Below are positions 2,500 to 38,256 of a stretch of DNA of 64,000 nt, in pieces. Each line of letters begins with the position of its first letter. The stretch's first letter is position 1. Position numbers and translations under genes: made by a program. The stretch spans positions 248,001-312,000 of the IMG/VR virus record IMGVR_UViG_3300024259_002152; one strand, written 5' to 3'. The notes under the pieces were generated by a model. It worked only from the letters and a program-made list of their open reading frames with translations, was not told where the DNA came from and made no database searches.

Positions 2500-2768
2500 T
2501 GGAATTTGTAGATAAAAATTTTGGTAGAGTTCTTCTTTTAGAAGAGCATGATTGTATAGCGGGAACATATTGTGGGGGGCATTCTGATAGAATGGAAAAA
2601 TGTGATATTGTTGCTATGAGGAATTTAGATACGAAAAAAGTTACAATATTTAAAAGTAGAAACACATCATCCGAAGATTGTAGAGTCAAACAGTTTGTTC
2701 TTAATTGGGGAATAGAGCAAAAAGTTTTTGAGCCAATAAAGAGTAGATTTGAGATTTTGGATTTATAA
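2499..2768 (+). CDS. hypothetical protein with C-terminal RFEILDL tag
   Basis: Ends PIKSRFEILDL; paralog of next gene. Confidence 0.8.
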   Translation: MEFVDKNFGRVLLLEEHDCIAGTYCGGHSDRMEKCDIVAMRNLDTKKVTIFKSRNTSSEDCRVKQFVLNWGIEQKVFEPIKSRFEILDL

Positions 2769-2769
2769 A

Positions 2770-3078
2770 ATGATTGAATTTGAACATGAAAAATATGGTA
2801 AAGTATTGATTTATGAAGTTGAAGACATGAAGAAAAAATCGTGTTTTTTGTCTATGGAGAATATAGAGGAAATACCTATCTCAGAATTCAATATAGAAGA
2901 ACTTCAGAAACTATCAGAAGCTTGTGTCGTTGGAGTTAGGAATATTAAGAATAGAAAGGTTGTAGTAATAAAAAATCGTTATGGACGATTAGATGATAAT
3001 GAAATAGAACAATTTATTCTTAATTATGGAATAAAAAAAGATCCAATCAACGATAGGTTTGAGATTTTGGATTTATAA
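2770..3078 (+). CDS. hypothetical protein with C-terminal RFEILDL tag
   Basis: Ends PINDRFEILDL; ATG at 2770 follows previous stop. Confidence 0.8.
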   Translation: MIEFEHEKYGKVLIYEVEDMKKKSCFLSMENIEEIPISEFNIEELQKLSEACVVGVRNIKNRKVVVIKNRYGRLDDNEIEQFILNYGIKKDPINDRFEILDL

Positions 3079-3079
3079 A

Positions 3080-3388
3080 ATGAATAGAATAGATTTATTG
3101 ATATTTGAAGATGCTCAAGAAGAAAAAGATAGAAGAGCAAAGCAAAAAGCTGACAGAGAGAAAAGACTTCAAGAAATAGAAGATAAAGGGTGTTGTGAGT
3201 GTTGTAAGCAATTTGGACGGGAGAATAGGAAAGAAATAGAATGGGTAGGGTCTATGACTCGTTATCATTGGGATATAGATAAAGATCCATTTGTAGATCC
3301 TAATAGATCATTGTTTTTATGTCCAGAATGTGCTGAAGAACATTGTAATCATATGAGCGACATGTGGCAAGCATATTATGGCGGATAG
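3080..3388 (+). CDS. hypothetical Cys-rich (putative Zn-binding) protein
   Basis: CCECC and CPEC; starts MNRIDLLIFEDA. Confidence 0.75.
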   Translation: MNRIDLLIFEDAQEEKDRRAKQKADREKRLQEIEDKGCCECCKQFGRENRKEIEWVGSMTRYHWDIDKDPFVDPNRSLFLCPECAEEHCNHMSDMWQAYYGG

Positions 3389-3707
3389 TTATAACGACAG
3401 ATTTGAGTTGTTGATTTTTGAAGATGCTATTGACTATGTAGAGAGAAAGCGCAAAGAAAAAGAAGAGCTTCATAGAAAAGCAGAACTATATAAAAGAGAG
3501 ATTGAGAAACAAGGAGTTTGTGAAGGTTGTGGTGAAAAAGGGCAGTTAAGGTGGATCAGCTATGGCGAAATATATAGTTGTTACGATTGTTTTGTTCATG
3601 ATTTAGATTGTAGGGCAAGTGTGATGGTGCCCATGAGAAGTGCCGAAAGTTTATCAGAATATCTAAGCGAAGGAGAATGGGAAGAATTGTGGGAAATGAA
3701 TAAATAA
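3378..3707 (+). CDS. hypothetical Zn-finger-like protein
   Basis: CEGC...CYDC; starts MADSYNDRFELLIFEDA. Confidence 0.75.
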   Translation: MADSYNDRFELLIFEDAIDYVERKRKEKEELHRKAELYKREIEKQGVCEGCGEKGQLRWISYGEIYSCYDCFVHDLDCRASVMVPMRSAESLSEYLSEGEWEELWEMNK

Positions 3708-3708
3708 T

Positions 3709-4734
3709 ATGTGCCTCACAAGAGAACAATTTAGAAATGGAGTATTTAATAGAGATAACAATCAATGTGTTATTTGCGGGGAATCTACGGGATTAGATGC
3801 CCACCACATAACAGAGAGAAGATTATGGGGACCATCTCAAGGATATTATTTGTCTAATGGTGCTACTTTATGTTCCAAACATCATATCGAGGCAGAACAA
3901 ACCATTCTTGGCTGTGAAGAAATTAGAAAAGCCGCAGGCATTAAAGAGATACTATTGCCAGAGCATTTATATGAAGAATATAATTACACCAAATGGGGGG
4001 ATATTGTTCTGCCAACTGGTATGAGACTAAAAGGAGAATTATTTTATGATGAATCTGTGCAAAAGATTTTAAAATCGGGAAATGTTTTAGATATTTATTC
4101 TGATTATGTGAAATATCCTAGGACAATGCATCTTCACTTTTCTTCTAAGGTTACAGAAGATGATAGAATTTTAGATGATGCTTCTTGTTTTGTCGGTAAA
4201 AGAATTATTGTAACAGAAAAGTTTGATGGAGAATGCTCAACTCTTTATGCTAATTATATGCATGCCAGATCTATTGATGGAGAGAATCATCCTTCTAGGA
4301 ATTGGTTGAAAGGTTTTCATAGTAAAATGGGATACAATATCCCTGAAGGATGGAGAGTATGCGGAGAAAATGTATATGCTAAACATACTATATATTATGA
4401 TAATTTAGATACTTATTTCTATGTTTTTTCTATATGGGATCAAAGGAATAATTGCTTGAGTTGGGACGATACTATAGAGTGGTCTCAACTCTTAGACCTT
4501 CAATTAGTTCCTGTCATATATGATGGGATTTGGGACGAAAAAATAGTCAAAGGGTTTTGTAATGACGATAAAAGAGAGGGTTTTGTTGTTAGGATAGCAG
4601 ATGGTTTTTCTTACGGAGAATTTAGAAAGTTTGTAGCTAAATATGTTAATCCTATATTTAAAGATAAATTGAACGAAGAAGATACTTATCATTGGAGATA
4701 TAGTGCTATGACACTTAATAGATTGGCAAAATGA
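3709..4734 (+). CDS. HNH-domain / ATP-dependent RNA ligase fusion
   Basis: N-term RD..CVICG..AHHI..NGATLC..HH (HNH-like); C-term KYPRT.HL, TEKFDG, EGFVVR, VAKYV nucleotidyltransferase motifs. Confidence 0.85.
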   Translation: MCLTREQFRNGVFNRDNNQCVICGESTGLDAHHITERRLWGPSQGYYLSNGATLCSKHHIEAEQTILGCEEIRKAAGIKEILLPEHLYEEYNYTKWGDIVLPTGMRLKGELFYDESVQKILKSGNVLDIYSDYVKYPRTMHLHFSSKVTEDDRILDDASCFVGKRIIVTEKFDGECSTLYANYMHARSIDGENHPSRNWLKGFHSKMGYNIPEGWRVCGENVYAKHTIYYDNLDTYFYVFSIWDQRNNCLSWDDTIEWSQLLDLQLVPVIYDGIWDEKIVKGFCNDDKREGFVVRIADGFSYGEFRKFVAKYVNPIFKDKLNEEDTYHWRYSAMTLNRLAK

Positions 4735-4988
4735 TGAAAGTAATTATGGAAATGGAGTTGGTATTTCCTTATAGAATATCTATGGGAATATTAGTAGAGT
4801 TTTGTTATTTGTGGAATACTACACTAATTTGTGGAGGAACAAGGAAAATCAAATCTATTATCTCAATGCCTTCTCACCATTTTAAACGTATTTTTGGAGT
4901 TAGTCCTGAAAAAAAAGAATATCCCGTTCCACGGGGTATGGAAAAATTTATTAGTAAGGTAGTAGTTAAAGGCACAAAGAAGAGATAA
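4731..4988 (+). CDS. hypothetical protein
   Basis: ORF overlapping upstream stop. Confidence 0.65.
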   Translation: MMKVIMEMELVFPYRISMGILVEFCYLWNTTLICGGTRKIKSIISMPSHHFKRIFGVSPEKKEYPVPRGMEKFISKVVVKGTKKR

Positions 4989-4996
4989 GGGAAATT

Positions 4997-5761
4997 GTGT
5001 TAAAACAAAATGAAGTATATTGCGGAGATTGTTGTGATTTGTTAAAGCAAATAGATGGTGGAGCAATAGATTTAATAGTCACTAGTCCGCCGTATGATGG
5101 GTTAAGGGATTATGAGGGTTATACTTTTGATTTTGAACCCATAGCAAAAGAGTTATACAGGGTGGTTAAAAATGGTGGAGTAGTCGTATGGGTTGTTGGT
5201 GATGAGGTTAAGAATGGCAGTGAGACAGGTACCAGTTTTAAACAGGCTCTTTATTTTAAAGAAATAGGATTTAACCTTCATGACACTATGATATATAAAA
5301 AGAATAGTAGCACATTTCCCGCTAGGAGAAATGGGAACAGATACTCACAGATTTTTGAATATATGTTTGTATTTAGTAAAGGCAAGCCAAAAGCCAATTT
5401 AATTTGCGATAAAATAAATAAATGGGCAGGATATACATCTTTTGATGGAAAAATTCCTGAGGTTCCCGAACTGTCCCCTCGAACTAATATATGGGAGTAT
5501 ACTACTTCTTTTAATGATAAAAATGATCATCCAGCAGTATTCCCTGAACAACTAGCAAAGGATCATATTCTAACTTGGAGCAAACAAAGCGATTTAATAT
5601 TAGATCCATTTTGTGGTAGTGGCACAACATTAAAGATGGCATATATTAATTATAGAAAATATATTGGTATTGATATTTCTCAAAGATATTGCGATATGGC
5701 TAAGTCACGGATAGAAAAGACTCGAACCCCATTAGAAATGAATATGTTTCAGGAAGAATAA
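4997..5761 (+). CDS. DNA N4/N6 methyltransferase, beta class
   Basis: TSPPY before HPAVFP and DPFCGSGT. Confidence 0.92.
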   Translation: MLKQNEVYCGDCCDLLKQIDGGAIDLIVTSPPYDGLRDYEGYTFDFEPIAKELYRVVKNGGVVVWVVGDEVKNGSETGTSFKQALYFKEIGFNLHDTMIYKKNSSTFPARRNGNRYSQIFEYMFVFSKGKPKANLICDKINKWAGYTSFDGKIPEVPELSPRTNIWEYTTSFNDKNDHPAVFPEQLAKDHILTWSKQSDLILDPFCGSGTTLKMAYINYRKYIGIDISQRYCDMAKSRIEKTRTPLEMNMFQEE

Positions 5762-7847: not shown

Positions 7848-7874
7848 TAATGATTTGAAAAGGAGAATTTGAAA

Positions 7875-8198
7875 ATGTTAAAAGAACTTACAGATAATAA
7901 TTTTCAACAAGAAGTAATGGATGATGGGGGAGTTGTTCTTGTTGATTTTTATGCTGAATGGTGCAGTCCTTGTAAGGTGCTAGCTAAAACGGTCGAAGAG
8001 ATAGAAGAAGATGGTAATAATAATGCTAAAATATGTAAGGCAGATATAGAAGCTAATTTTACGGCTGTTCAAGATTTAAATATAAAGAGTGTTCCTTTCA
8101 TTGTTTTGTATAAAGGGGGTAAAGTTGTTAATCAGCATGTAGGGCTTCGCTCTAAGCAAGATTTGCAAAGAGATATAAGTGAGGCTCATAATGGATGA
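7875..8198 (+). CDS. trxA: thioredoxin
   Basis: VLVDFYAEWCSPCK, SVP. Confidence 0.92.
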   Translation: MLKELTDNNFQQEVMDDGGVVLVDFYAEWCSPCKVLAKTVEEIEEDGNNNAKICKADIEANFTAVQDLNIKSVPFIVLYKGGKVVNQHVGLRSKQDLQRDISEAHNG

Positions 8199-8508
8199 GT
8201 ATCAATGGACACTAGAAAAAGCCAGAATTTTGATGGCACAAGAATTAGATATTCCACCTGATGATATTAATACTACGGCCATATATGATAGTATTTTTAG
8301 AGCGATCAGAGAATCTTGTGAAAGTGGTAAAGGAGAAATAGTTTTAACTCTTAAAAATAATGAAGAAGAAAGCGCTATTCTTAATGAAACAGGTGCAGAA
8401 ATTATTAATAGGATATTTAATGATCAACATCCTTTTAGTGACATAGCTCAAAATTATAAAGAATGGTATGTAAATTATGTCATGAATAAAATGGATGAAG
8501 GAGATTAA
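8191..8508 (+). CDS. hypothetical protein
   Basis: ORF with GAGG RBS overlapping trxA end. Confidence 0.7.
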   Translation: MDEYQWTLEKARILMAQELDIPPDDINTTAIYDSIFRAIRESCESGKGEIVLTLKNNEEESAILNETGAEIINRIFNDQHPFSDIAQNYKEWYVNYVMNKMDEGD

Positions 8509-16134: not shown

Positions 16135-16186
16135 TCCATTGTAAGATAAGAAGTTATAAAATTATCAAAAAAATAGAAAATAGTTA

Positions 16187-16214
16187 TTGACAAAGTAGAA
16201 TTTGTCGATATAAT
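16187..16214 (+). promoter_or_regulatory. consensus sigma70 promoter upstream of RNA cluster
   Basis: TTGACA(16187-92)-N16-TATAAT(16209-14); GACAAA/TTTGTC inverted repeat overlaps it. Confidence 0.8.
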
Positions 16215-16244
16215 ACTATCATTGACAAGTAAATAGAGAGAATG

Positions 16245-16458
16245 ATATGGGTTGAAGGTGTGTAGGTTATCGAAAATACTGGCCCTAAGGTTGGCATCTC
16301 AGGGAACGCTACTCGATAGAGTAGTTGGGGCGACTGAGTGAGAATACCGAGCAACCTGGATGTATTTCCAGGCTCTGCGTGCCGAATACGATACCCTTCG
16401 GGATTCGTACAGGTGGCCATAAGTGCTCCAATTCCCTATGCCCGTGACATATCCATAT
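16245..16458 (+). ncRNA. unassigned structured RNA 1 (~214 nt)
   Basis: GC-rich; 5'/3' closing helix ATATGGGT/ATCCATAT; nested helices TGGCC/GGCCA, TTGGCAT/GTGCCGA, CTCAG/CTGAG, CTACTC/GAGTAG, CCTGGA/TCCAGG; C-UUCG-G loop. Confidence 0.65.
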
Positions 16459-16462
16459 TTTT

Positions 16463-16686
16463 TAATTAATATGTTGGCTGCATGGTGTGAAAACGTTGAG
16501 AGGCGACATGCTGAAACCACATGAAAAGCTTGAACTGCTTTTTACAGAAAGTAGGTGCGGGTTTAATAAATGGTGGGTATAAAATTTGCCCAAGGGTATC
16601 GAGGGCCTTTGGTAGCCGCCGCGTACGGCAAGCCATAAATCGTAGCAAGTAGCGGGTAAAGCCAATCTTGTCCAACATGTTAATTA
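16463..16686 (+). ncRNA. unassigned structured RNA 2 (~224 nt)
   Basis: 15-bp closing helix TAATTAATATGTTGG/CCAACATGTTAATTA (one G-U); hairpins AAAAGC/GCTTTT, TGGGTA/TGCCCA, GCCG/CGGC. Confidence 0.62.
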
Positions 16687-16709
16687 TTTGTTCTTTAAAA
16701 AATAAATAT

Positions 16710-17054
16710 GGGGTCGAAAGGTTTTCGATTAGATTAGGAGAAATCAACGGCGTGTACGAGATAGTAGTTGGCTCGTTAAAAATCTACTAAAAACTGTAAT
16801 TGGCAACAATTATGCAATGGCTGCCTAAGCAAAATTAGGTTGTCTATCTTCTGATTCCTATTAGGAAGAATAGGCAAAAGCAATAGGATAGCATAAACTC
16901 TTTTTCTCAAGAGAGGTGAAGCGAAATTAATTTGGGATAGAAATGATGAACCCTGTCAATTGGGGTCAGAGTTTTGAAATTTAAATAATTGACTACACAC
17001 GTAGAAGTTGATTTTGAAATATTCTAAGACTGGGCTTCGATGCCCACGACTCCA
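16710..17054 (+). ncRNA. ssrA: tmRNA; tag (A)GNNYAMAA
   Basis: Acceptor stem GGGGTCG/CGACTCC-A with G3:U70; T arm TGGGC-TTCGAT-GCCCA; pk1 CGAG/CTCG plus TAGTAG/CTACTA; tag ORF 16802-16828. Confidence 0.93.
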
Positions 17055-17102
17055 CTTTTAAAAAAACGCCTATCAAAAAGGCATATAATAAGATAGGACA
17101 TT

Positions 17103-17363
17103 ATGGACAATAAGGCAATAGACAGACCATTTGATGAAGAAATTCTTAAACAGGCAACCTCTATGGCTCAGGATTATCATATTGTCCTTGAGGGGGATCA
17201 GAAGTCAGGATTTGTTGGGACATGGTGCGAATATCCCTCAATTATAGGAGATGGAGAAACAAAAGAAGAATGTATAGAAAGCACTAGAGAAGCTATTACT
17301 GTTGCTCTTGCCTATTTGCTAGAGACAGGGCAAGAACTTCCTAAGGTGAATGAGGAACTATGA
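17103..17363 (+). CDS. hicB: HicB-family antitoxin (orphan)
   Basis: Y.IVL....GFVG.W.EYP.IIGDGETKEECIE..REAI...L.....ELP. Confidence 0.8.
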   Translation: MDNKAIDRPFDEEILKQATSMAQDYHIVLEGDQKSGFVGTWCEYPSIIGDGETKEECIESTREAITVALAYLLETGQELPKVNEEL

Positions 17364-18812: not shown

Positions 18813-19364
18813 ATGAATAAAACATACCTAACAGAGCCGCAGAGAAAACTGATAACAGATAATTATCGGTTATTAAGGCATTTTATAGGTCGATCAATTA
18901 AGAACAAAGTTGTTCCGAGATATCTAGAACATGAATTTATTAGTAAAATATTGCTTAAATTCTGTATTTCTGCCTTAAAGTTTGATGAAGAATTAGGATA
19001 TAAATTTTCTACTTATGCTTATAGGGGTTTTCAATTAGGTTTAAAGGATGTTCTATCTTATGAAAATACTAGATTTGGACAAATATGTTATTTAGAAGAT
19101 GTGGAGCAATATGAGATAGAATGTGAGAAAGTTGATGAACTAAGAGATGATTTTTTTTATGATTTTATTGATAATATAGATTTGGGTTCAAGAGATAAAT
19201 CTATTATGGAGGATTATTATTATGAGGGATTGTCATTTTCTAAGATAGGGCAGAAAAAGAATTTAACAGGGGAGGCAGTTCGATTGGTTGTTGATAGGTC
19301 TTTAAATAAAATTAGACATATGGTTCACAAAAGAAGATTAAATATGGAAGATTTTTATAAGTAG
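18813..19364 (+). CDS. RNA polymerase sigma factor (sigma70 family)
   Basis: Region 2 KFDEELGYKFSTYAY; region 4 EGLSFSKIG...LTGEAVR. Confidence 0.88.
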   Translation: MNKTYLTEPQRKLITDNYRLLRHFIGRSIKNKVVPRYLEHEFISKILLKFCISALKFDEELGYKFSTYAYRGFQLGLKDVLSYENTRFGQICYLEDVEQYEIECEKVDELRDDFFYDFIDNIDLGSRDKSIMEDYYYEGLSFSKIGQKKNLTGEAVRLVVDRSLNKIRHMVHKRRLNMEDFYK

Positions 19365-19371
19365 GAATAAT

Positions 19372-19947
19372 ATGATGAAGCAAAGGGTAGTTAAATCGGA
19401 GAAATTAACTAATAATAAATGGATTAATTTATTTAAGGTCCAATATATTAACTCTAAAGAGAAAGTATGTAATTGGGTTTTCGCGTCTCGAAAAAAAGAT
19501 CCTTTCACAGATAAAAAAATAGACGCGGTAGTTCTGGTTGTCACTGTTGATACTCCTAAAGGTCGAATGCTTGTAGTGATAAAAGAATACCGAGCACCTC
19601 TTGCAGATTATGAGTATGGTTTCCCTGCTGGTCTGATAGATCCAGGAATGACAATAGCAGAAACAGTTAAAAAAGAATTAAAGGAAGAAACAGGGCTAGA
19701 TTTAGTTAGGATTATAGGAGAGAGCGGTCCAGTTTATTCTTCTGCTGGATTGTCCGATGAAGCGGTTACTATGGTATTTGTTGAAGCAGAAGGAGAAATG
19801 AATACAGATCATCAAGAAGATACTGAAGATATAGAAGTATTCCTTTATGATATAAATGATATTAGTGATTTACTAACATCTGATAAAAAAATAGGAGCCA
19901 AAGCTTGGGGAGTTTTATACTATTACTCTCAGATTGGGAAAATATAA
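19372..19947 (+). CDS. NUDIX hydrolase (ADP-ribose pyrophosphatase-like)
   Basis: FPAGLIDPG...KELKEETGL, YSSAGLSDE, EDIEV. Confidence 0.88.
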   Translation: MMKQRVVKSEKLTNNKWINLFKVQYINSKEKVCNWVFASRKKDPFTDKKIDAVVLVVTVDTPKGRMLVVIKEYRAPLADYEYGFPAGLIDPGMTIAETVKKELKEETGLDLVRIIGESGPVYSSAGLSDEAVTMVFVEAEGEMNTDHQEDTEDIEVFLYDINDISDLLTSDKKIGAKAWGVLYYYSQIGKI

Positions 19948-19952
19948 ATATT

Positions 19953-20621
19953 ATGGTTGAAGGGCAAGAATCAAGTGAAACTAAATTTACTTTTGAAGAG
20001 GTAAGGAGTCATTTATACAAGCAAGCTATTAAAGTGCATAAACGATTTTACGGAAGATATGAAATTAATGAGTTGGTTAATGAGGTGTGGGTCAAAGGAA
20101 GTATTCAAGAATTAGAAAATATAAAATATGTTTCTGCGAGAGCATATTATGATATGATTGATTATATTAGAGTGATAGAAGGTAAATGTATGACATATAA
20201 AGGTATGTCATATCGTGCTCCGAGGGCAAAAAATAATATGCATTCTAGCACAATAGATATTGGCACGCAGCAGCTTGATATTTTCTATGGATATGGAAGT
20301 CATGATCGTGATTTTTTTGATCGTCAAGAAGATACTAAGAGAAGCTATATTGATTATGTTGATGATAAAGACGAAGTAGAATATATATTATCTCATCTTT
20401 CTGAACAGCATTTAGATTTTATAAAAAAGCATTTCTTCGAAGGGTTAACTTTAAAAGAAATTGCTAAACAATTTCAAATAGCAAAACGAACAGCATGGGG
20501 TAGGCGTCATAAAATTTTAAAGAATATAAGAATGGAGCGTATGTCAATATTTCTAAGAGCAAAATATTTAAGAGAATATAGAAAAAGAAAGAGAGATTCA
20601 AATGCCTACCTATCAATATAA
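19953..20621 (+). CDS. divergent sigma factor-like protein
   Basis: RAYYDMIDYIR (region 2-like); FEGLTLKEIA HTH (region 4). Confidence 0.72.
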   Translation: MVEGQESSETKFTFEEVRSHLYKQAIKVHKRFYGRYEINELVNEVWVKGSIQELENIKYVSARAYYDMIDYIRVIEGKCMTYKGMSYRAPRAKNNMHSSTIDIGTQQLDIFYGYGSHDRDFFDRQEDTKRSYIDYVDDKDEVEYILSHLSEQHLDFIKKHFFEGLTLKEIAKQFQIAKRTAWGRRHKILKNIRMERMSIFLRAKYLREYRKRKRDSNAYLSI

Positions 20622-23689: not shown

Positions 23690-23714
23690 TTAATAAACTT
23701 TTAGCTATGATTGG

Positions 23715-23770
23715 AACTTCCTATGATGTATTGTGGATTGTTGTTCACCTACTCATAGGAAGTTTTTCTT
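23715..23770 (+). terminator. long hairpin / terminator between pspA and channel gene
   Basis: AACTTCCTATGA (23715-26) / TCATAGGAAGTT (23753-64) + T run. Confidence 0.55.
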
Positions 23771-23781
23771 TAAAGAGGATA

Positions 23782-24867
23782 ATGATGAAAAATATATTAA
23801 TATTTTTAGTTTTGCTTATGATCTGCAAATTCTCTTACTCGGAGAGCATATATAAAACCACTCAAATTTATGTCTCTGATATGAAGCCCTGTGTTATTGT
23901 CGAGGAGTCAGAAGATAGTCATATTCCTGTTTCTATTTCTGGTTTTGAAATAGATTTAGGAAATGAAGTTGCAAAAGACCTCATAGCACAAGACATAATT
24001 AAAGATTGGGAATTTGTTCCTATATCATGGCATAAACTAGAAGAGAATATAAAAAACGGCAATGCAGATATGGCTTGTGCTGGATTTACGATACGTTCTA
24101 AAAGAATGGACTGGGCAGATTTCTCTGTGCCTACTATGAATTCTGGTTTAGGAATAATGGTATTAAAAAATCCAGAAAAGAATTCTATATTATGTAAATT
24201 AAAAGTTCTCTATGAAGCCCTTATAATGCCCATAACCTTATTCGGATTGTTTTTGCTAGCTTTTTCTCATTTTATATGGTTGGCAGAAAAGAAAAATCCT
24301 GGGATTAATGACCACTATTTTCCAGGGATTTTTGAGTCAATATATTTTTGTATAGTTACATGTTCTACAGTTGGTTATGGAGATTATACTCCTAAAAGAT
24401 GGACAACCAAAATAGTAACAATAGCACTTATATTTTGTGGTATTATTGCTTTTTGTAATTTCACAGCTTTACTTTCTGCCGATTATACTACTGAGAAAAT
24501 TACAGGAGATATTAGATCTCCAGAGGATCTAAAAGGTAAGATTGTCCTAACTCAAAAAGGGACAACAAGTGATGATTATGCAAAAGGGTTAGGGGCTTCT
24601 AAAGTTAAGAAAGTTGATAATATAGATACCGCTTGCGACTATTTATTGCTTGGAAGAGGGGATGCTGTAGTATTTGATCATCCAGTTCTACTTAATTATG
24701 TAAAAGAGAATCCCGATAAGGTTGAATTAGTAGATGGTATTTTCGATGAACAATATTATGGGTTTGTGTTTCCTAAAGGAAGTCCTTTGAAAAGAGCAGT
24801 TGATAAATCCATCCTTAAATTATATGAAGATGGGACTTATAAACGACTTTATCAAAAGTGGTTCTAA
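23782..24867 (+). CDS. GluR0-like ligand-gated K+ channel
   Basis: Signal peptide; SGFEIDL and TIRSKR..WADFS.P (S1); TM-pore TVGYGD-TM; S2 with YGFVFPKGSPL; AGAGGA RBS. Confidence 0.9.
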   Translation: MMKNILIFLVLLMICKFSYSESIYKTTQIYVSDMKPCVIVEESEDSHIPVSISGFEIDLGNEVAKDLIAQDIIKDWEFVPISWHKLEENIKNGNADMACAGFTIRSKRMDWADFSVPTMNSGLGIMVLKNPEKNSILCKLKVLYEALIMPITLFGLFLLAFSHFIWLAEKKNPGINDHYFPGIFESIYFCIVTCSTVGYGDYTPKRWTTKIVTIALIFCGIIAFCNFTALLSADYTTEKITGDIRSPEDLKGKIVLTQKGTTSDDYAKGLGASKVKKVDNIDTACDYLLLGRGDAVVFDHPVLLNYVKENPDKVELVDGIFDEQYYGFVFPKGSPLKRAVDKSILKLYEDGTYKRLYQKWF

Positions 24868-31084: not shown

Positions 31085-31092
31085 GAGATAAA

Positions 31093-31347
31093 ATGTTTGA
31101 CTTATTAATCGGATGTAGGGCTTCACATGCGGAGACACCAGACGAAACTGGAGTTATAGTGAAGGTTGATAGTGAAGATTATGTTTGGATATTAACTAGT
31201 GAAGGACATATATCGTTTGCTAAGCATAAGAATATAAGAATTCATCTTGATGATGTTAAATTTCTACATTCATACAGTAGAAATCATAAAGCAAGACAAA
31301 AAATTATGGAAGGCATCACAAATCGTGCGGAGATTTTGGATTTATAA
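31093..31347 (+). CDS. hypothetical protein with C-terminal RAEILDL tag
   Basis: Ends ITNRAEILDL; AGGAG RBS. Confidence 0.78.
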   Translation: MFDLLIGCRASHAETPDETGVIVKVDSEDYVWILTSEGHISFAKHKNIRIHLDDVKFLHSYSRNHKARQKIMEGITNRAEILDL

Positions 31348-32722
31348 TGAGTATTATTAGGAAATTTAACATATTTTTACAATTTTCTAAAGTTTTTTAG
31401 AGGAATTTTCGATTAAATATATAATAATTAATCAGATGCTTGAACTGAACCTTAAAGTATTTAATATTATATATTTAAGAGTAATTTCTTCTTCCTTTAG
31501 TTCAGTTCAGGAATTAGATTTTACTCTTTTTTTATAAATTATGACTCTAAAAGCATTTAAATTTAGATTAGAGCCTAATTTACAACAAAAAGTTTTGATT
31601 AACAAAACTTTAGGTTGTTGTAGATTTATCTATAATCAAATGCTTAACGAAAAATAAACTAAATACAAAAATTCTGGTAAATCTTCCACTAAAACTGAAA
31701 AAGAATATAAAATAGAGTTTGATTGGTTAAAAGAAGTAGATAGTATTGCTCTTCAGCAATCTCGAATAGATCTAAAGACTGCTTATGATAATTTCTTTAG
31801 AAAAATTAAAGCAGGACAACCTACTAATCTAAGATTTAAATCCAAAAAAAATCCTAAAAACTCTTACAGAACTATAAATATTAATAATTCTATTAGAATA
31901 GCAAACAATACTATTAAACTTCCTAAGTTGGGATTTGTTAAATTTAGAAAATCAAAAGAAATATCAGGAATTATTAAATCAGTCACAATTTCTAAGAATA
32001 TCTTAAATAGATATTATATATCTGTTCTTTGTAGAACAGAGATAGAAAATTTTCCTGAATTAGATGCTAAAATAGGAATAGATGTGGGATTAAAAGATTT
32101 TTGTATTACTTCAAACAATGAATTTGTTTCTAATCCTAAATATTTAAGAACATTAGAACTTAAATTAAAGAAAGCACAAAAAATACTCAGTAAAAGAGCT
32201 AAAGGTGGTAAAAATAGATTTAAACAACAAAAGAGAGTCTTTAAGATACATGAGAAAATCAGAAATCAGAGGTTAGATTTTTTACATAAATTATCTACTA
32301 AACTAATTAACGAAAACCAAGTAATCTGTTTAGAAGATTTACAAGTAAAGAATATGGTAAAAAATCATTATTTGGCTAAAAGTATTTCAGATGCTAGTTG
32401 GAGTAAATTTATAGAATTGCTAAAATACAAAGCGGATTGGTATGGAAGAAATCTAATACAAATAGATAAATTCTTTCCTAGTTCAAAACTTTGTAGTAAT
32501 TGCGGAAGTGCCAAGAAAGATTTGACTCTAAAAGATAGAGAGTATTATTGTAGTTCTTGTGGAATTACAATTGACAGAGATTATAATGCTTCATTAAATA
32601 TTTTGAATGAAGGATTAAAAATATTAAATAGCGGTTGGGACGACCGTGATAGCTTACCAAATATACAAACACTAGTTTGTAGTTCGTAAGAATTATCCAC
32701 CTTAATGGTGGAGGAAGTTCAA
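31348..32722 (+). mobile_element. IS200/IS605-family tnpB-only (IS1341-like) element
   Basis: tnpB; right-end hairpin TCCACC-TTAAT-GGTGGA and terminal TTCAA; excision recreates a 22-nt junction found twice elsewhere. Confidence 0.75.
31541..32689 (+). pseudogene. tnpB: TnpB RNA-guided nuclease with in-frame TAA at 31655-31657
   Basis: MTLKAFKFRLEPN..GCCRFIYN start at 31541, in frame with GIDVG, LEDL, CSNCG/CSSCG, DRDYNAS; stop at codon 39. Confidence 0.85.
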
Positions 32723-33584: not shown

Positions 33585-35180
33585 GTGAGTAAAAAACGAA
33601 GACATTTTTCCGATATCATAGGAATCGACGCTTTTAACGTAATAATAGAAAAAGCTATTAACTCATCAAAAAGGAATAATATGAAAAACGGTCCCGTCAC
33701 TTCTCCAGTAAAATATGGTCAAAACGGAAATGTATCAATACAATCGAAAGTCTCTAAAGATACAGACTTTCTGGATGATTTTCCCGAAGATGCTCAACCA
33801 GAAGTTTGTTCGGACTCTTGCGGGTATGGGGTCAGTCAAGAAGAAAAAGATAGACGATTGGATGAAAATTTAGCAAAGGTTAAATTTGCAGATCAAATTA
33901 AAATAGATTTCATTCCTTCTATTGATTATAGAATACTTTGTAGATTTCTAGGTGTTACTACTGTCAATGAGATAACAAATCATCCTTTTCAATCTCAACC
34001 TCTTATTACTCTTATATTGATGGAGAGTATCGATGGGTTCATGAGACAAGAGGGATATGATATGGTTGGAGAATTGAATTTCGATGATCATGGTAATTCT
34101 ATCCCTCCCGAAAAAAATCCCTGGAACATTAAAGGCAAAGAAACAACTTTTACTATCACTGGTTTTTTATTCTTCGAAAAAATAAAGGGCCAAAAAACAG
34201 ATAATGTTGCTTTCTTTTTGTTCGCGGATTTGGAAAGAGGAGGAGCCTCTATTACCTGCTACAGTACTGATACCAATAAGTCTAAAGATATTGTTAAAGA
34301 CCTACAACAATATGCAAAGAAGAATAACTGTTTAAGAGGAGCTAAACTCAAAGATGTGAATATGATTACAGCGTCATTTTCAGAAGTAGATATAGTCGAA
34401 GATTTTACATGGAACAATTATTACTATTCAGATGAGATCAAAGACCTGTTCCAATTAGAGGTATTTGATTTTATCACTAATGTGGAAAAATATAACGAAT
34501 GTGGTATTAATAAAAGAGGTATCATTCTGCATGGCAGACCAGGATGTGGAAAAACAACTATTGGTAATATTATTTGCAACATGACTCCCAAAAACACGGT
34601 AATCTGGATTACTCCTGAAATATTGTCAGAGAATAATTATAGAGCCATGTCTTCCATAAAAGCTCTTTATAAATTGGCAGATTTCCTTTCTCCTTGTATT
34701 ATTATGTTGGAAGATTTAGATCTATTTAGTCAGGATAGAGATATGGGTGGAGATGTGCTGTCTTTGGGGGCGTTGATGAATATTCTTGATGGTGTTAATA
34801 CTATATCAAATTCCGTTACTATTGGCACTACTAATAGGTTAAAATCGATTGAAACTGCTCTGAGAAATAGACCTGGGAGATTTGATAGAATAGTTGAAAT
34901 AGAATCTCTTTCTACGGAGCTTAGAATTAAAATGCTCAAAGAAAGATTAGATGAATGGAAAGTTTCTCAGGCAACTCTAGATTATATTGTTGGTCAAACT
35001 AAAGATTGGACTGGAGCAGAGGTGCAAGAATTTATTAATAGTTTGAATCTAAAACATATAAGTAGTAAGAGAAAAATCAGGAAGATGGACCAGGCATGGG
35101 CAGAAGAAATTATAGCAACTCTTAGTAATTTTGGAGTGGGAGACGCTAGCTCTGGTTTTGGTTTTAGCAAAAAAGATTAA
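33585..35180 (+). CDS. AAA+ ATPase
   Basis: GRPGCGKT, MLEDLD, TTN, NRPGRFDR. Confidence 0.9.
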   Translation: MSKKRRHFSDIIGIDAFNVIIEKAINSSKRNNMKNGPVTSPVKYGQNGNVSIQSKVSKDTDFLDDFPEDAQPEVCSDSCGYGVSQEEKDRRLDENLAKVKFADQIKIDFIPSIDYRILCRFLGVTTVNEITNHPFQSQPLITLILMESIDGFMRQEGYDMVGELNFDDHGNSIPPEKNPWNIKGKETTFTITGFLFFEKIKGQKTDNVAFFLFADLERGGASITCYSTDTNKSKDIVKDLQQYAKKNNCLRGAKLKDVNMITASFSEVDIVEDFTWNNYYYSDEIKDLFQLEVFDFITNVEKYNECGINKRGIILHGRPGCGKTTIGNIICNMTPKNTVIWITPEILSENNYRAMSSIKALYKLADFLSPCIIMLEDLDLFSQDRDMGGDVLSLGALMNILDGVNTISNSVTIGTTNRLKSIETALRNRPGRFDRIVEIESLSTELRIKMLKERLDEWKVSQATLDYIVGQTKDWTGAEVQEFINSLNLKHISSKRKIRKMDQAWAEEIIATLSNFGVGDASSGFGFSKKD

Positions 35181-35231
35181 AGTTTAAAAGTGAAAATGAC
35201 GATATAACATATGGGTGTTATATTTATACTC

Positions 35232-35269
35232 TCCTAACTCCTTGTTATAAGGGGAGTTAGGATTTTTTT
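35232..35269 (+). terminator. intrinsic terminator candidate
   Basis: TCCTAACTCC...GGAGTTAGGA + T run. Confidence 0.65.
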
Positions 35270-35300
35270 CAAAAATATAGAGAAAAATTATATTTTCTAT

Positions 35301-35328
35301 TTGACTGCAAAGTAGAAAACAGTATAAT
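35301..35328 (+). promoter_or_regulatory. sigma70-type promoter of Ro60 gene
   Basis: TTGACT-N16-TATAAT with AAAGTAGAA in spacer; near-identical block at 56862-56890. Confidence 0.7.
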
Positions 35329-35386
35329 TGCCAAAGTAGAATTCAATATATCTAAATAATTAGGTTGATTTATAAGGAGAACAACA

Positions 35387-37114
35387 ATGGCTAAGTATGC
35401 AAATCATGTAGCGAATCCAAAGACTTCACAAACAAAGAAGGCAAAGAGTACTCAGGTAAAAGGCAGAGCGGGTGGGTATGTTTTCAAGGTCGATGACTGG
35501 ACAAGGCTGAACCGTTTCCTAATCATTGGTAGTGAGAAGGGTTCTTACTATGCCTCTGATCGTGAGTTGACTATGGAGAATTACGACTGCATCCTGAATT
35601 GTTTGAAGTTGGATGCAAAGCGTACTGTCGATACTATTGTAGAGATTAGTGATCAGGGTCGTGCCATTAAGAATGATCCAGCTATCTTTGCATTGGCGGT
35701 ATGCAGTGTTCATGGCGACGAAAAGACCAAAGCATATGCTAATCTAGTTATGCCTAAGGTTGCTCGTTTCTCTACTGCTTTCTTCTCATGGGTTGATTCT
35801 ATCAACACATTGAAGGAAGGTCGTAAGGGTAAGGGTCTGTTAAGAGCCATTGGAAGATGGTATACAGAAAAAGATGCTGTGAAGTTGGCATACCAGATTT
35901 GTAAGTACCCAGGTCGTTCAATAGGTGGCCAAAGATGGACTCACGGGGACGTTTTGCGTCTTGCAAGGATCTCTCCATCTAAGGATGGCAGACCTTCTAG
36001 AAATGGTAGGGCACTAACGATTCCTTCAGAGGACCATGCTACTGTTTTTCATTACGCAACACATGGTATCACAACTGCTGCGACTCTTGCTCAAAGAGAA
36101 AAAGATGCTAAAGCTACTGGTAAGACCCAGGAAGCTCCTGGTATCTCTGTAAAGCAGTATAAAGCTTTGAAGGATAGTAAGCTTAAGTATATCTGGGCAC
36201 ATGAGCAATGTAAGGTTGCGACTAAGAATAGTGAAGTAGTTTCATTAATTAAAAACTACAATCTTACAAGAGAATCTGTCCCTCCACAGTTTAGAAATGA
36301 ATTGTTGGTGCAAAAGGCCCTGCTGCCAGGGATGCCTATGACTGCTTTGATCCGAAATTTGGGAAGCATGACTTCTTCAGGTCTTTTGAAGCCATTGGCT
36401 GATGAGACTTCATTAGTAATCGACAAGATTACAAATGAGGAAATACTGAAGAAGAGTCGTATTCATCCTATGACACTTATGCTGGCATTGAAGACTTACA
36501 GCAGTGGTAGTGGCATGAGGACTACTTGGAAGCCTGTAGGAGCTATCAAAGATGCTATGGAAGATGCTTTCTACAAAGCGTTCAACTATGTTGAGCCAAC
36601 TGGAAAGAAATTTCTTTACGGTATTGATGTTAGTGGTTCTATGGGTTGGTCAGAAGTTAATGGTATGCAAGCACGCGAAGCTGCCGCAGTCGTAGCAATG
36701 ACGTGTGCAAGAACCGAGAAGAACTATGATCTTATGGCTTTTGGTCATGCATTCGTGCCACTTAACATTACCGCTAAGGATAGTTTGGATACTGTGGTTA
36801 GACGAACTGCTAATTTGAATTTTGGCGGAACTGATTGTGCATTACCTATGAAGTATGCAATGAAAAATGGTCTGGATGTTGATGTGTTTGTTGTTCTAAC
36901 GGACAGCGAGACATGGTTTGGTGATATTCATCCATTTGAAGCATTGAAGCAGTATCGCAAGAAGTTCAATAAGAACGCCAAGCTTGCCGTGTTGGCATTT
37001 ACAAGCAATGGCTTTACAATAGCCGACCCAAGCGATGCGGGAATGATGGATATTGTTGGTTTGGATTCTAATGTGCCGAAGGTATTATCTGAATTCGCGG
37101 CAAATAGACTTTAA
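35387..37114 (+). CDS. Ro60/TROVE-domain RNA-binding protein (Rsr-like)
   Basis: AGGYVF..DDW.RL.RFL..GSE.G.YY, MPMTALIRNLG.MT, RIHP, vWA MIDAS DVSGSM, GGTDCALPM, TDSETW. Confidence 0.95.
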   Translation: MAKYANHVANPKTSQTKKAKSTQVKGRAGGYVFKVDDWTRLNRFLIIGSEKGSYYASDRELTMENYDCILNCLKLDAKRTVDTIVEISDQGRAIKNDPAIFALAVCSVHGDEKTKAYANLVMPKVARFSTAFFSWVDSINTLKEGRKGKGLLRAIGRWYTEKDAVKLAYQICKYPGRSIGGQRWTHGDVLRLARISPSKDGRPSRNGRALTIPSEDHATVFHYATHGITTAATLAQREKDAKATGKTQEAPGISVKQYKALKDSKLKYIWAHEQCKVATKNSEVVSLIKNYNLTRESVPPQFRNELLVQKALLPGMPMTALIRNLGSMTSSGLLKPLADETSLVIDKITNEEILKKSRIHPMTLMLALKTYSSGSGMRTTWKPVGAIKDAMEDAFYKAFNYVEPTGKKFLYGIDVSGSMGWSEVNGMQAREAAAVVAMTCARTEKNYDLMAFGHAFVPLNITAKDSLDTVVRRTANLNFGGTDCALPMKYAMKNGLDVDVFVVLTDSETWFGDIHPFEALKQYRKKFNKNAKLAVLAFTSNGFTIADPSDAGMMDIVGLDSNVPKVLSEFAANRL

Positions 37115-37123
37115 TTCCTTTCG

Positions 37124-37156
37124 AGGCAATGGAGCAACCCTCCATTGCCTTTTTTC
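37124..37156 (+). terminator. intrinsic terminator
   Basis: AGGCAATGGAG-CAACC-CTCCATTGCCT + T run. Confidence 0.85.
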
Positions 37157-37208
37157 TTATAAACTGATATTGTCATGGAAGATTATTTTTTATTGTAAGG
37201 AGTATTTC

Positions 37209-37790
37209 ATGTCCCTACAGGATCAGAATCGGATGTTGTATATTTTGCATAAAGATGGAGTAAGTAGACAACACATATCGGCTATAATGAAAGATCTAAA
37301 AACATCAGGGATATTCGATGAACCAGAGGATTTAGAAGGAGTCGCTGAGGAAGATTGGGAGTTAATAGAAGAACAGGCATTTTGGGTATTTGAAAGTGAT
37401 GTGTCAAATAAAGAAAAAATAAATGCTTTAAGGACAATTAAACAGAAACAAGAAGAAATAGAACAAACGAGAATGTCACAATATTTTATGGAGCAAGAAA
37501 GAAGGGTGTTGGCTAAACGCCAAGAGCTTATAGCAGCAGGACTTATAAAACCTGAACCTGTTACTTATTCCCCTCATATGCACATGAGAAGCACTACCAG
37601 ATATGGTAGAACTCCTCTTCATGAAGCAGTAGCTATGAGAGATCTTCGTTTGGTAAGAAAACATCTTCAAAGCGGGAAATACCTTGATAAAGTGGACAAT
37701 AACGGTCATACTGCTATGGAAATGGCTTATTATGAGGGCTATACTGAAGCTTTATCTTTGTTTAAAAAGTATGCAAAAGCCCAAAAATGA
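37209..37790 (+). CDS. ankyrin-repeat protein
   Basis: GRTPLHEAV, DNNGHTAMEMA; AAGGAG RBS. Confidence 0.8.
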   Translation: MSLQDQNRMLYILHKDGVSRQHISAIMKDLKTSGIFDEPEDLEGVAEEDWELIEEQAFWVFESDVSNKEKINALRTIKQKQEEIEQTRMSQYFMEQERRVLAKRQELIAAGLIKPEPVTYSPHMHMRSTTRYGRTPLHEAVAMRDLRLVRKHLQSGKYLDKVDNNGHTAMEMAYYEGYTEALSLFKKYAKAQK

Positions 37791-37800
37791 ATTAATTGAA

Positions 37801-38197: not shown

Positions 38198-38224
38198 AGA
38201 ACATATAACAAATTAATATACAAC

Positions 38225-38256
38225 AAGGATGTAAGTGTTTAACTTGCATCCTTTTT
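38225..38256 (+). terminator. intrinsic terminator
   Basis: AAGGATGTAAGT...ACTTGCATCCTT + T run. Confidence 0.7.

Follow-up and report, generated by a model that had tools for sequence, protein, structure and literature searches.

Bacterial and phage Y RNAs (YrlA, YrlB, Yrn1, Yrn2) are partners of the Ro60/Rsr protein. Their 5' and 3' ends pair in a long terminal stem, and several different RNAs can be found per genome. A Ro60-binding motif, GNCGAAN0-1G in bacteria or GGUCCGA in animals, lies on the 5' strand near the 5' end (PMC4201824), and the RNAs are encoded within about 4 kb of the Ro60 gene on the same strand. In Deinococcus they are made as a polycistronic precursor with a tRNA, in the order Yrn2-tRNA-Asp-Yrn1 (PMC4201824). 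The bacterial species sized in that paper are about 65-150 nt, with Mycobacterium smegmatis YrlA at about 147 nt. GOLLD and ROOL are large ornate RNAs of phages and prophages, often located next to tRNA genes, and are reported to form RNA-only multimers. Stable RNAs are also found in rRNA and tRNA operon precursors, where several RNAs lie behind one strong promoter, each closed by a helix joining its two ends and separated from the next by a short spacer. Huge phages carry tRNAs, tmRNA and translation genes, but their non-coding RNA content beyond these is almost unexplored.

Here we describe a 224-nt structured RNA, RNA 2, located beside the tmRNA gene of a huge uncultured marine phage. The window analysed is a stretch of 64,000 nucleotides, positions 248,001 to 312,000 of IMG/VR record IMGVR_UViG_3300024259_002152. 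An earlier note, made from the sequence alone, had described RNA 2 as a second independent non-coding RNA with a 15-bp terminal helix, released by processing at the closing stems. The features of the locus, and of RNA 2 as modelled from its homologues, are as follows.

16187-16214 (+), promoter of the stable-RNA operon: TTGACA, 16 nt, TATAAT, 12 of 12 consensus matches.
16244-16458 (+), RNA 1, a separate structured RNA with a bulged terminal stem carrying an invariant GGGUUGAAGG (Y-RNA-like); not part of RNA 2.
16463-16686 (+), RNA 2, the full length of the conserved family.
16463-16477 (+), 5' strand of P1, TAATTAATATGTTGG.
16480-16511 (+), P2 hairpin: GCAUG 16480-84 with CAUGC 16507-11, enclosing the conserved GUGUGA and the optional P2a hairpin CGUU[GAGA]GGCG (16494-16505).
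16517-16576 (+), P3-P4-P5 arm: P3, CCAC 16517-20 with GUGG 16573-76; P4, AGCUU 16527-31 with GGGUU 16559-63; P5, a variable hairpin at 16535-16554.
16577-16592 (+), conserved A-rich single strand GUAUAAAAUUUGCCCA.
16593-16608 (+), P7: AGG 16593-95 with CCU 16606-08, capping the conserved 10-nt loop GUAUCGAGGG (16596-16605).
16610-16635 (+), P8 hairpin: outer stem UGG/CCA (16610-12 with 16633-35), inner stem GCCG/CGGC (16615-18 with 16626-29), apical loop CCGCGUA (16619-25) holding the palindrome CGCG.
16645-16671 (+), P9: GCAAG 16645-49 with CUUGU 16667-71, stacking directly on P1 and enclosing the conserved UAGCGG...AGCCAAU (16660-66).
16672-16686 (+), 3' strand of P1, CCAACATGTTAATTA.
16687-16709 (+), A/U-rich spacer UUUGUUCUUUAAAAAAUAAAUAU between RNA 2 and tmRNA, the presumed processing region.
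16710-17057 (+), complete tmRNA gene.
35387-37114 (+), Ro60/Rsr orthologue (TROVE + vWA), 19 kb downstream, a putative protein partner for RNAs of the array.

The observation made in the earlier note is confirmed. The coordinates are exact and P1 consists of 15 bp with one U-G. RNA 2 starts 4 nt after RNA 1 and ends 23 nt before the tmRNA match (Rfam RF00023, 124.7 bits), which covers model positions 1-374 of 374 and is not cut off; RNA 2 lies wholly outside it and is thus neither an extension nor a missing piece of a permuted tmRNA. There is a single perfect sigma-70 promoter and no + strand terminator between it and the tmRNA 3' end.

We found eight further full-length homologues and one decayed copy, all in uncultured marine phage contigs. 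The loci that were fetched are numbered here with the prefix L, and the decayed half copy is in L006. Those on identified IMG/VR contigs come from viral contigs of 298-548 kb, whereas the rest come from metagenome, MAG or Logan contigs with the same gene order. A covariance model of the family (R1) matches the copy in the window end to end at 229 bits (E = 4e-60), and the eight other full-length matches score 183-262 bits. Nothing else matched in 623 kb of fetched loci.

The homologues strongly support the structure. On a MAFFT alignment of seven sequences, 96.4% of cells pair and 24 of 50 pairs carry compensatory double changes; none of 500 shuffles reached this, and slid controls paired only 37-44%. 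On the covariance-model alignment, 95.3% of cells pair and 31 of 48 pairs carry double changes, again with 0 of 500 shuffles doing as well and slid controls at 34-43%. As the nine sequences are related, the shuffle statistics overstate significance, and the slid-partner control and the five distinct versions of P2 are the safer evidence. The earlier note had named folding energy no better than dinucleotide shuffles, or a conserved antisense ORF, as grounds for rejection. Folding energy is only modestly better than shuffles, with z = -2.16 for the window and -0.9 to -2.7 over nine homologues, so that the strong evidence is covariation and not energy. Every frame of every homologue contains stops and no reading frame is conserved.

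P1 is 12-20 bp in the other copies, and 12 of its 15 pairs show changes on both sides across the homologues. All five pairs of P2 covary and 100% of cells pair, in the versions GCAUG/CAUGC, GUGCU/AGCAC, AUGUG/CACAU, ACGUG/CACGU and GUGUG/CACAC. P2a is missing in L005 and L006 and longer in L098. P3 becomes CCUA/UAGG in L096 and UCAC/GUGA in L006, and P4 becomes AGCCAG/CUGGUU in L098. The A-rich strand together with GUUUAAUA (16561-68) is the most conserved block of the family. The middle pair of P7 occurs as G-C, U-A and C-G. Both stems of P8 covary. In P9, 100% of cells pair, with A-U changed to G-C in L049 and L005, and in the other homologues it also encloses an inserted P10 hairpin of about 35-75 nt. 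The peripheral hairpins P2a, P5 and P10 thus vary in length or are absent while the core is kept, which is typical of functional structured RNAs. In this model GUAUAAAA, the P7 and P8 loops and AGCCAAU are expected to be accessible unless they engage in tertiary contacts. A tertiary pairing of 3 bp between loop CGA 16600-02 and UCG 16640-42 is possible, seen as C-G to A-U in L049 and L005, but this is tentative; a single-column covariation scan for further tertiary pairs was too noisy with nine sequences to add others. Many G-U pairs (P4, P9, P2a, P1) would be A.C mismatches on the opposite strand, and the orientation is also that of the promoter and tmRNA.

Of the four internal hairpins proposed in the earlier note, two are not supported by the homologues. 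CGTT-GAGA-GGCG is kept as a GNRA-capped hairpin (GAGA, GGAA, GAAA), although absent from two homologues, and GCCG-CGTA-CGGC lies in the covarying P8, for which homologues favour the register GCCG[CCGCGUA]CGGC (16615-16629). In contrast, AAAAGC/GCTTTT is not conserved; AAGCUU instead pairs with GGGUU in P4, and CUGCUUUU pairs with GAAAGUAG in P5. TGGGTA/TGCCCA conflicts with the better supported P3 and has G.A and G.G mismatches in homologues. An alternative helix GCCC/GGGC around P7 likewise has mismatches in homologues, and P7 is better supported. Pairing of the invariant AGCCAAU with the tmRNA PK1 loop UUGGCU was rejected, since the L061 tmRNA has UCGGCU while its RNA 2 is unchanged. A reading of the GAGA/GAGG-rich loops as a sarcin-ricin-loop or Shine-Dalgarno decoy was dropped, as L011 and L096 have GGAA and GAAA instead and the flanks do not fit.

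The loop of P8 is palindromic in all nine copies: ACGCGU in five, GCGCGU in one, CGCG in two and UCUAGA in L062. L062 is the one lineage where the loop sequence was replaced, and the new loop is again a 6-nt palindrome, the chance of which is about 3% for a 7-nt loop. The idea of a dimer rests on a single independent replacement, and in three copies (window, L098 and L005) the strict Watson-Crick palindrome is only 4 nt. The hairpin resembles the HIV-1 dimerisation initiation site and other kissing-loop dimers, where a 7-10-nt loop consists of a 6-nt palindrome flanked by purines (AAACGCGUA here, AAGCGCGCA in HIV-1), but this is an analogy of one hairpin only, without homology.

tmRNA follows RNA 2 on the same strand at every locus where downstream sequence is available. 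The distance is 23 nt in the window, about 20 nt in L005, 164 nt in L061, 213 nt in L011/L094, 856 nt in L049, roughly 200 nt in L093 with a small ORF between and roughly 130 nt in L096 with RNA W between. Equivalent TTGACA/TATAAT promoters lie upstream of the arrays in L005, L006, L061, L049, L093, L094, L096 and L098. RNA 2 follows RNA 1 in the window, L049, L096 and L098, but is the first element behind the promoter, with no RNA 1, in L005, L061, L062 and L093. The two RNAs share no similarity. RNA 1 has four long homologues, with 11 of 57 predicted pairs carrying double changes. Some loci carry up to four more unassigned RNAs, including a Y-RNA-like one. The UUGUUCUUUAAAAA motif of the spacer recurs after RNA 2, and again after RNA X and before tmRNA, in L061, L005 and L094. 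Related phages (L002/L007 and L097) encode tmRNA without RNA 2, and RNA 2 is therefore dispensable for tmRNA itself.

No previously described family matched. Scans against Rfam 15, including RNase P, 6S and SRP RNA, Y RNA/YrlA, raiA, ROOL, GOLLD, OLE, riboswitches and known ribozymes, gave only tmRNA at gathering score in the window and no plausible hit at E up to 10 on the 661-nt region. The same was found for four homologous loci at E up to 1, for the Ro60 loci and for the richest array; the weak hits (PYLIS_6, Yar_1, SNORD12, mir-73, mcrA) are chance. In the GenBank phage collection, neither blastn at distant sensitivity with the RNA region nor megablast with 20 kb of the window found a match, and tblastn with the peptidase and Ro60 found only distant relatives (27-39% in the listed rows), so there is no cultured relative. 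Two pattern scans of 185,579 bacterial and archaeal genomes gave 0 and 24 hits, and all 24 were chance matches by nhmmer. Exact-pattern scans also picked up high-GC coding regions by chance (L004, L008, L009). No homologue was found in the papers searched. No RNA sequencing run with the sequence was found, and DNA contigs of four seawater runs added only fragments of related phages and no usable variants in RNA 2.

Like Y RNAs, RNA 2 has a terminal stem joining its ends in all nine copies, and the window encodes Ro60 (PF05731 at 6e-32, PF25045 at 1e-62). Close relatives of this protein lie in two other RNA 2-bearing phage contigs, in a protein search that finds only close relatives, so that three host genomes encode Ro60. 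However, a regular-expression scan found no Ro60-binding motif in the window and only sporadic hits at non-homologous positions in four copies, and the 5' strand of P1 is AU-rich and not conserved. RNA 2 is on the same strand as the Ro60 gene but 18.7 kb upstream, and model R1 found no copy within 5 kb on either side of five phage Ro60 genes. It has no T-arm or D-arm module and no tRNA-like hit with ARAGORN, is 224-288 nt long, and is a six-branch junction rather than a stem plus one module. RNA 1 is the better Y-RNA candidate. Like GOLLD and ROOL, RNA 2 is phage-borne and ornate with conserved junctions, lies beside a tRNA-type gene and may self-associate through loop contacts, although this is only inferred from the palindromic loop. 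It shows no sequence or structure match to them, is two to four times smaller and is limited to one marine phage clade. The operon is organised like rRNA and tRNA precursors, but its members are unassigned RNAs plus tmRNA.

We therefore consider RNA 2, with moderate confidence, to be a member of a previously undescribed family of ornate, stable non-coding RNAs in a clade of huge uncultured marine phages. The analysis itself establishes that the + strand folds into a closed multi-helix junction (P1, P2 with or without P2a, the P3-P4-P5 arm, P7, P8, and P9-P10 stacked on P1), that its helices are maintained by compensatory change and its loops and junctions conserved in sequence, and that it lies behind a consensus promoter, upstream of and on the same strand as tmRNA with no terminator between. 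The remainder is inferred from sequence alone, including expression, the transcript ends and any function. RNA 2 would be made as part of a polycistronic precursor, (RNA 1)-(Z)-RNA 2-(W)-(X)-tmRNA, for which the Deinococcus Y RNAs offer a precedent, and released by host endonucleases: RNase P at the tmRNA 5' end, RNase E-type cuts in the recurring UUGUUCUUUAAAAA spacers and possibly RNase III at the 20-bp P1+P9 stack. Its terminal helix would then hide both ends from exonucleases. The released RNA would act in trans as a folded scaffold whose conserved single-stranded blocks bind a partner, and the P8 loop may let two copies pair loop to loop, so that the active form may be a homodimer. That the field of action is the phage's takeover of RNA quality control and translation, alongside tmRNA, the Y-RNA-like RNA 1 and the phage Ro60 and RNA-ligase genes, is a guess. 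The interpretation in the earlier note is thus partly supported: a structured non-coding RNA independent of RNA 1 and matching no Rfam family is borne out, whereas release by processing at the closing stems remains an inference from the shared promoter, the absence of a terminator and the recurring A/U-rich spacer.

Two other readings appear unlikely. A role as a cis-acting 5' leader, which would help transcription, folding, processing or stability of tmRNA and have no function once removed, is suggested by the constant position upstream of tmRNA in one transcription unit, only about 20 nt away in the window and L005. This is contradicted by the RNAs X and W (L061, L094, L096) or small ORFs (L049, L093) that sit between the two, by the closed terminal helix, which makes RNA 2 an insulated module, by related phages with promoter then tmRNA and no RNA 2 (L002, L097), and by L006, where an intact tmRNA lies beside a decayed RNA 2. 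The conserved loops and junctions and the 224-288-nt fold are also more than a leader needs. About equally unlikely is a large, divergent Y RNA, whose terminal stem region would bind the phage Ro60 while its body tethered an effector, as YrlA does with PNPase. No recognisable Y RNA lies within 5 kb of any of the Ro60 genes in the window and the two other contigs, so their Y RNAs must be elsewhere; bacterial Y RNAs come several per genome, and RNA 2 sits beside the Y-like RNA 1. Against this stand the features given above and a size two to three times that of known Y RNAs.

The remaining alternatives are even less likely. An RNase P-like or self-cleaving ribozyme that processes the array would fit the ornate junction with invariant unpaired nucleotides and GNRA loops, the size, and the position among RNAs that all need end processing. 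However, no Rfam ribozyme matched even at E = 10, no cleavage-site signature was found, and the RNase P-like P4 pairing AAGCUU (16526-31) with AAUCUU (16664-69) is broken without compensation in L049 and L005, where the same changes are compensated in P9. A miniature inverted-repeat transposable element is very improbable despite the near-perfect 15-bp inverted repeats bounding 224 bp. The window holds a single copy, with no other site matching the repeat with fewer than 3 mismatches; the position next to tmRNA is the same across at least 8 phage lineages, the arms differ between homologues through compensatory substitutions, including G-U pairs that are mismatches at the DNA level, the interior also covaries as RNA, and no target-site duplication or transposase is present. 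A retron is not supported either despite the inverted repeats, since the adjacent genes scanned (peptidase C1 upstream, HicB-like ORF downstream) carry no reverse-transcriptase domain, and at the homologous loci the downstream neighbours are RNAs, tmRNA or ORFs of at most about 75 aa. The least likely reading is a minus-strand protein. Two antisense ORFs of 67 and 93 aa (16462-16665 and 16466-16747) exist in the window, but each frame has 1-13 stops in the homologues, indels of 15-75 nt are not multiples of three, and the 93-aa ORF runs into the tmRNA gene.

A more far-reaching possibility, which we regard as speculative and rather unlikely, is that RNA 2 and its neighbours (RNA 1, Z, W and X) are a phage-encoded set of dedicated RNP or RNA-only machines expressed together with tmRNA. 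RNA 2 would then be a self-dimerising scaffold that redirects host ribosome rescue or RNA surveillance during infection, for example by docking the phage Ro60, tmRNA/SmpB or an exonuclease, and would represent a new functional class of viral non-coding RNA rather than a variant of any known one.

One promoter here is predicted to drive an operon of up to five unassigned, covariation-supported structured RNAs plus tmRNA, in phages that also encode Ro60 and an RNA ligase. RNA 2 was found more often than any of the other unassigned RNAs in these operons and is the most ornate. The family can be turned directly into an Rfam-type model, and RNA 2 is a compact, well-defined target for structure determination. 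A natural dimerising RNA of this size would be of interest in light of the RNA-only assemblies recently found in ROOL, GOLLD and OLE. If RNA 2 is a stable trans-acting RNA, it points to a phage-encoded RNP toolkit for controlling host RNA quality control or ribosome rescue.

Inspection of the region 16140-17100 of the window revealed the following order of elements on the + strand:

16187-16214 (+), a perfect sigma-70 promoter (TTGACA, 16 nt, TATAAT)
about 16244-16458 (+), a first structured stretch, here called RNA 1
16463-16686 (+), RNA 2, the RNA under study
a 23-nt A/U-rich spacer
16710-17057 (+), a complete tmRNA gene (Rfam RF00023, 124.7 bits, model positions 1-374)

No + strand terminator-like site was found between the promoter and the tmRNA 3' end. 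The 15-bp terminal helix described in the earlier note, pairing 16463-77 with 16672-86 and including one U-G, is exactly as claimed, and the observation is confirmed. The + strand folds at -67.7 kcal/mol, with z = -2.16 against dinucleotide shuffles, whereas the - strand gives z = -0.9. The G+C content is 0.41-0.47 over the two RNAs, compared with roughly 0.28-0.36 in most of the nearby coding sequence, rising to about 0.41 in the 3' part of the peptidase gene.

The window is part of a 350,866-bp viral contig from seawater (IMGVR_UViG_3300024259_002152 = Ga0233437_1000033), on which nearly all ORFs are located on one strand. These encode DNA methylases and a papain-type peptidase directly upstream of the RNAs, two sigma-factor-like proteins (18813-20621), a NUDIX protein, a queuosine-salvage protein, a Ro60/Rsr orthologue (35387-37114) and a T4 Rnl1-like RNA ligase (38281-39492). 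The latter two are part of a cluster of RNA-repair-type genes (33585-41539, +), consisting of an AAA ATPase, Ro60 (TROVE + vWA), an ankyrin-repeat protein, the RNA ligase, an ADP-ribosylglycohydrolase and a calcineurin-like phosphoesterase. A HicB-like antitoxin ORF is located directly after the tmRNA gene (17103-17363, +), although this rests on a weak Pfam match below the curated cutoff. One ORF (23707-24867, +) has the domain set of a prokaryotic glutamate-receptor-type ligand-gated potassium channel, with a solute-binding domain split by an ion-channel pore. At 31085-32689 (+), a short TnpB-like ORF (OrfB_IS605 + Cas12f1-like TNB, 253 aa) follows an 844-nt ORF-free, AT-rich gap containing long inverted repeats (31399-31492). 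This may be a truncated or degenerate IS605-type element, and a full-length TnpB lies beside the peptidase gene in another phage of the clade. Runs of tandem paralogous 109-aa ORFs are found at 2749-3707 and 7869-8508 (+), and their junctions repeat a 44-nt sequence. Furthermore, two families of intergenic repeats look like phage-specific promoters, TTTGAAAGTGAAAGT...TATAAT and AAAATTCCAGACAAYG... (1472, 9110, 18752, 20962, 24873, 39516; and 37781, 44979, 48231, 52604, 53026, 53274, 53920, 55887). The first type also drives the RNA 2 operon in one of the homologous loci, L062. Searches of GenBank phages revealed no close relative.

To find homologs, a conserved tmRNA block, and then conserved blocks of RNA 2 itself, were used as DNA patterns against the viral, metagenome and genome collections, after which homologues of the syntenic peptidase were looked up in a large assembly index. 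This revealed eight further distinct full-length homologues, at the loci L005 (548-kb viral contig), L061 = L055 (298 kb), L062 (461 kb), L011 = L094, L049, L093, L096 and L098. In addition, a decayed copy keeping only the 5' half was found at locus L006 (3212-3322, -). It retains P2, P3, P4 and P5 of the fold described below but has lost everything 3' of GUAUAAAAAUUGACC. The decayed copy sits beside an intact tmRNA, which shows that tmRNA does not depend on RNA 2 in cis. Three related phages have the promoter followed directly by tmRNA, or no array at all (L002/L007, L097, L099). Two pattern scans of one genome for each of 185,579 bacterial and archaeal species found no homologue, as all 24 pattern matches failed a profile search. 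Literature searches found no description of such an RNA.

RNA 2 is a structured RNA. RNAalifold on five sequences already recovered the terminal helix, P2, P8 and P9 with compensatory changes, and a nine-helix model was curated. On a plain MAFFT alignment of seven sequences, 96.4% of cells form standard pairs and 24 of 50 pairs carry changes on both sides. None of 500 column shuffles reaches any of these values except the count of further pair types (9 of 500), whereas sliding the 3' partners by 1-3 columns drops pairing to 37-44%. A covariance model was then built (R1: 264 positions, 48 pairs), which finds the nine full-length members at 183-262 bits and the decayed copy of L006 at 74 bits. 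Nothing else credible was found in 623 kb of fetched DNA, including the +/-5 kb around five phage Ro60 genes. On the model-based alignment 95.3% of cells pair, 31 of 48 pairs have double changes, 0 of 500 shuffles match and slid controls pair 34-43%. That alignment leans towards the model, and the MAFFT result is therefore the independent check.

The clearest single pieces of evidence come from the individual helices. P2 exists in five fully complementary sequence versions. P3 is CCAC/GUGG in most copies, but CCUA/UAGG in L096 and UCAC/GUGA in L006, and P4 is AGCUU/AAGUU in most copies and AGCCAG/CUGGUU in L098. P8 ranges from UGG..GCCG/CGGC..CCA to a continuous UUAACACU/AGUGUUAA, and P1 ranges from UAAUUAAUAUGUUGG to AAUAAAAGUAUUUG and AUGACGUAUUUG, each with its own complement. 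The many G-U pairs fix the strand as +. No reading frame is open across the homologues, and length differences of 15-75 nt fall in hairpins P2a, P5 and P10. Two outcomes had been set beforehand as refuting the earlier note, namely conservation of an antisense ORF instead of base pairing and a folding energy no better than shuffles. Neither refutes it, although folding energy on its own is only a modest signal (z = -0.9 to -2.7 across nine homologues).

In window coordinates, P1 (16463-77 with 16672-86) closes a junction carrying the following elements on the + strand, in order:

P2 (16480-84 with 16507-11), whose loop starts with the conserved GUGUGA and in most members holds a GNRA-capped hairpin, P2a
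the conserved UGAAA
a long arm of P3 (16517-20 with 16573-76), P4 (16527-31 with 16559-63) and the variable P5, with the internal loop AUGAA / UAAUAAAUG
the invariant A-rich strand GUAUAAAA(A)UUG
P7 (16593-95 with 16606-08), with the conserved 10-nt loop GUAUCGAGGG
P8 (16610-35)
the conserved RAAAUCKUA
P9 (16645-49 with 16667-71), which stacks directly on P1 and encloses UAGCGGAGA, the optional P10 and AGCCAAU

A possible three-pair contact links the P7 loop (CGA, 16600-02) and J8/9 (UCG, 16640-42). It shows one C-G to A-U change, shared by L049 and L005, and is regarded as tentative.

The apical loop of P8 contains a palindrome in all nine members. This is ACGCGU in five copies, in the format AA-ACGCGU-A or G-ACGCGU-A, GCGCGU in L005, CGCG in the window and L098, and UCUAGA in L062, the only lineage whose loop sequence has been replaced. 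A 6-nt palindrome is expected in a random 7-nt loop about 3% of the time. However, the replacement is one independent event, and three members have only four strict Watson-Crick self-complementary bases. A palindrome cannot pair within a 7-9-nt loop, and the natural reading is therefore loop-loop pairing between two molecules, as in retroviral dimerisation hairpins. This remains a hypothesis and not a result.

In every locus that extends far enough, tmRNA lies downstream of RNA 2 on the same strand.

Distance from RNA 2 to tmRNA and what lies between them. The L093 and L096 distances were read off the sequence.
Locus; distance to tmRNA; what lies between
window; 23 nt; spacer only
L005; about 20 nt; spacer only
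L061; 164 nt; RNA X
L011/L094; 213 nt; RNA W and RNA X
L096; about 130 nt; RNA W
L093; about 200 nt; a small ORF
L049; 856 nt; a small ORF

In L062 and L098 the fetched DNA shows no tmRNA after RNA 2 before it ends or runs into ORFs. RNA 2 is the first element after the promoter in L005, L061, L062 and L093, whereas it follows RNA 1 in the window, L049, L096 and L098. In L011/L094 RNA 1 is also present, with RNA Z between it and RNA 2. The richest array, that of L094, reads peptidase, promoter, RNA 1, RNA Z, RNA 2, RNA W, RNA X, tmRNA, terminator. The gene order AAA_28, N6/N4 DNA methylase (with an intein or LAGLIDADG insertion in some), unknown ORF, dCMP deaminase, C1 peptidase, RNA array, sigma factor, NUDIX is conserved across this phage clade (loci L093-L099 and the gene tables of the peptidase homologues), and the RNA array is the variable part.

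RNA Z, W and X are three more unassigned RNAs of these operons, each closed by its own terminal helix, and sit between RNA 1, RNA 2 and tmRNA. They are located as follows:

L094 about 4425-4580 (RNA Z), about 4850-4930 (RNA W) and about 4945-5035 (RNA X)
L061 8104-8225 (RNA X)
L062 6421-6496
L096 and L098 (RNA W)

RNA W and RNA X share UGGCG...CUGAC near the 5' end. RNA X also has CCAAUUGYC next to its 3' closing strand, which resembles GCCAAUCUUGUC of RNA 2. In the L094 array each of the unassigned RNAs, RNA 1 and RNA 2 included, is closed by its own terminal helix, and none of them matches Rfam. The motif UUGUUCUUUAAAAA recurs after RNA 2, after RNA X and before tmRNA. Together these facts support a polycistronic stable-RNA operon from which separate RNAs are cut, and argue against RNA 2 being merely a tmRNA leader. 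The cutting itself is inferred, as no RNA sequencing run with the sequence was found, and DNA contigs of four seawater runs added nothing on this point.

A relationship to Y RNAs, whose models the earlier note suggested testing, was also examined. The window does encode Ro60, and close Ro60 relatives lie in two more RNA 2-bearing contigs, but no recognisable Y RNA was found near any of them. Bacterial Y RNAs are defined by Chen et al. 2014 (PMC4201824) by the terminal stem, a GNCGAAN0-1G motif near the 5' end, proximity to rsr (within 4 kb, same strand) and, for YrlA, a tRNA-like module. The same study shows polycistronic synthesis with a tRNA in Deinococcus. RNA 2 has only the first of these features. 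By contrast, RNA 1 carries an invariant GGGUUGAAGG in its bulged terminal stem, one letter away from the bacterial Y-RNA motif. RNA 1 is its own conserved family of five members without an Rfam hit, one of them a short form of about 95 nt, located as follows:

window 16244-16458 (+)
L049 2380-2595
L094 4184-4408
L098 3333-3521
L096 about 4089-4170

This is in phages that encode Ro60 but have no recognisable Y RNA next to it. RNA 1 is a good candidate for the phage Y RNA. RNA 2 was therefore not classified as a Y RNA, although a Y-like role as a Ro60-tethered scaffold remains a minority possibility. A transposable element is excluded by copy number, by the fixed position and by the RNA-type compensation in the arms, and an antisense gene is excluded by stops and frame-breaking indels. 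An RNase P-like ribozyme has no model match, and its diagnostic P4 pairing fails covariation.

The reading in the earlier note, of a second independent non-coding RNA released by processing at the closing stems, is partly supported, being largely right on structure and independence but unproven on processing. We are highly confident that RNA 2 is a genuine conserved structured RNA, as demonstrated by the comparative analysis, whereas processing, action in trans and dimerisation are inferred from sequence alone, and our confidence in the whole proposed life cycle is moderate. RNA 2 is a new family of ornate phage non-coding RNA, tightly linked to phage tmRNA genes, and is probably a stable trans-acting scaffold that may dimerise.
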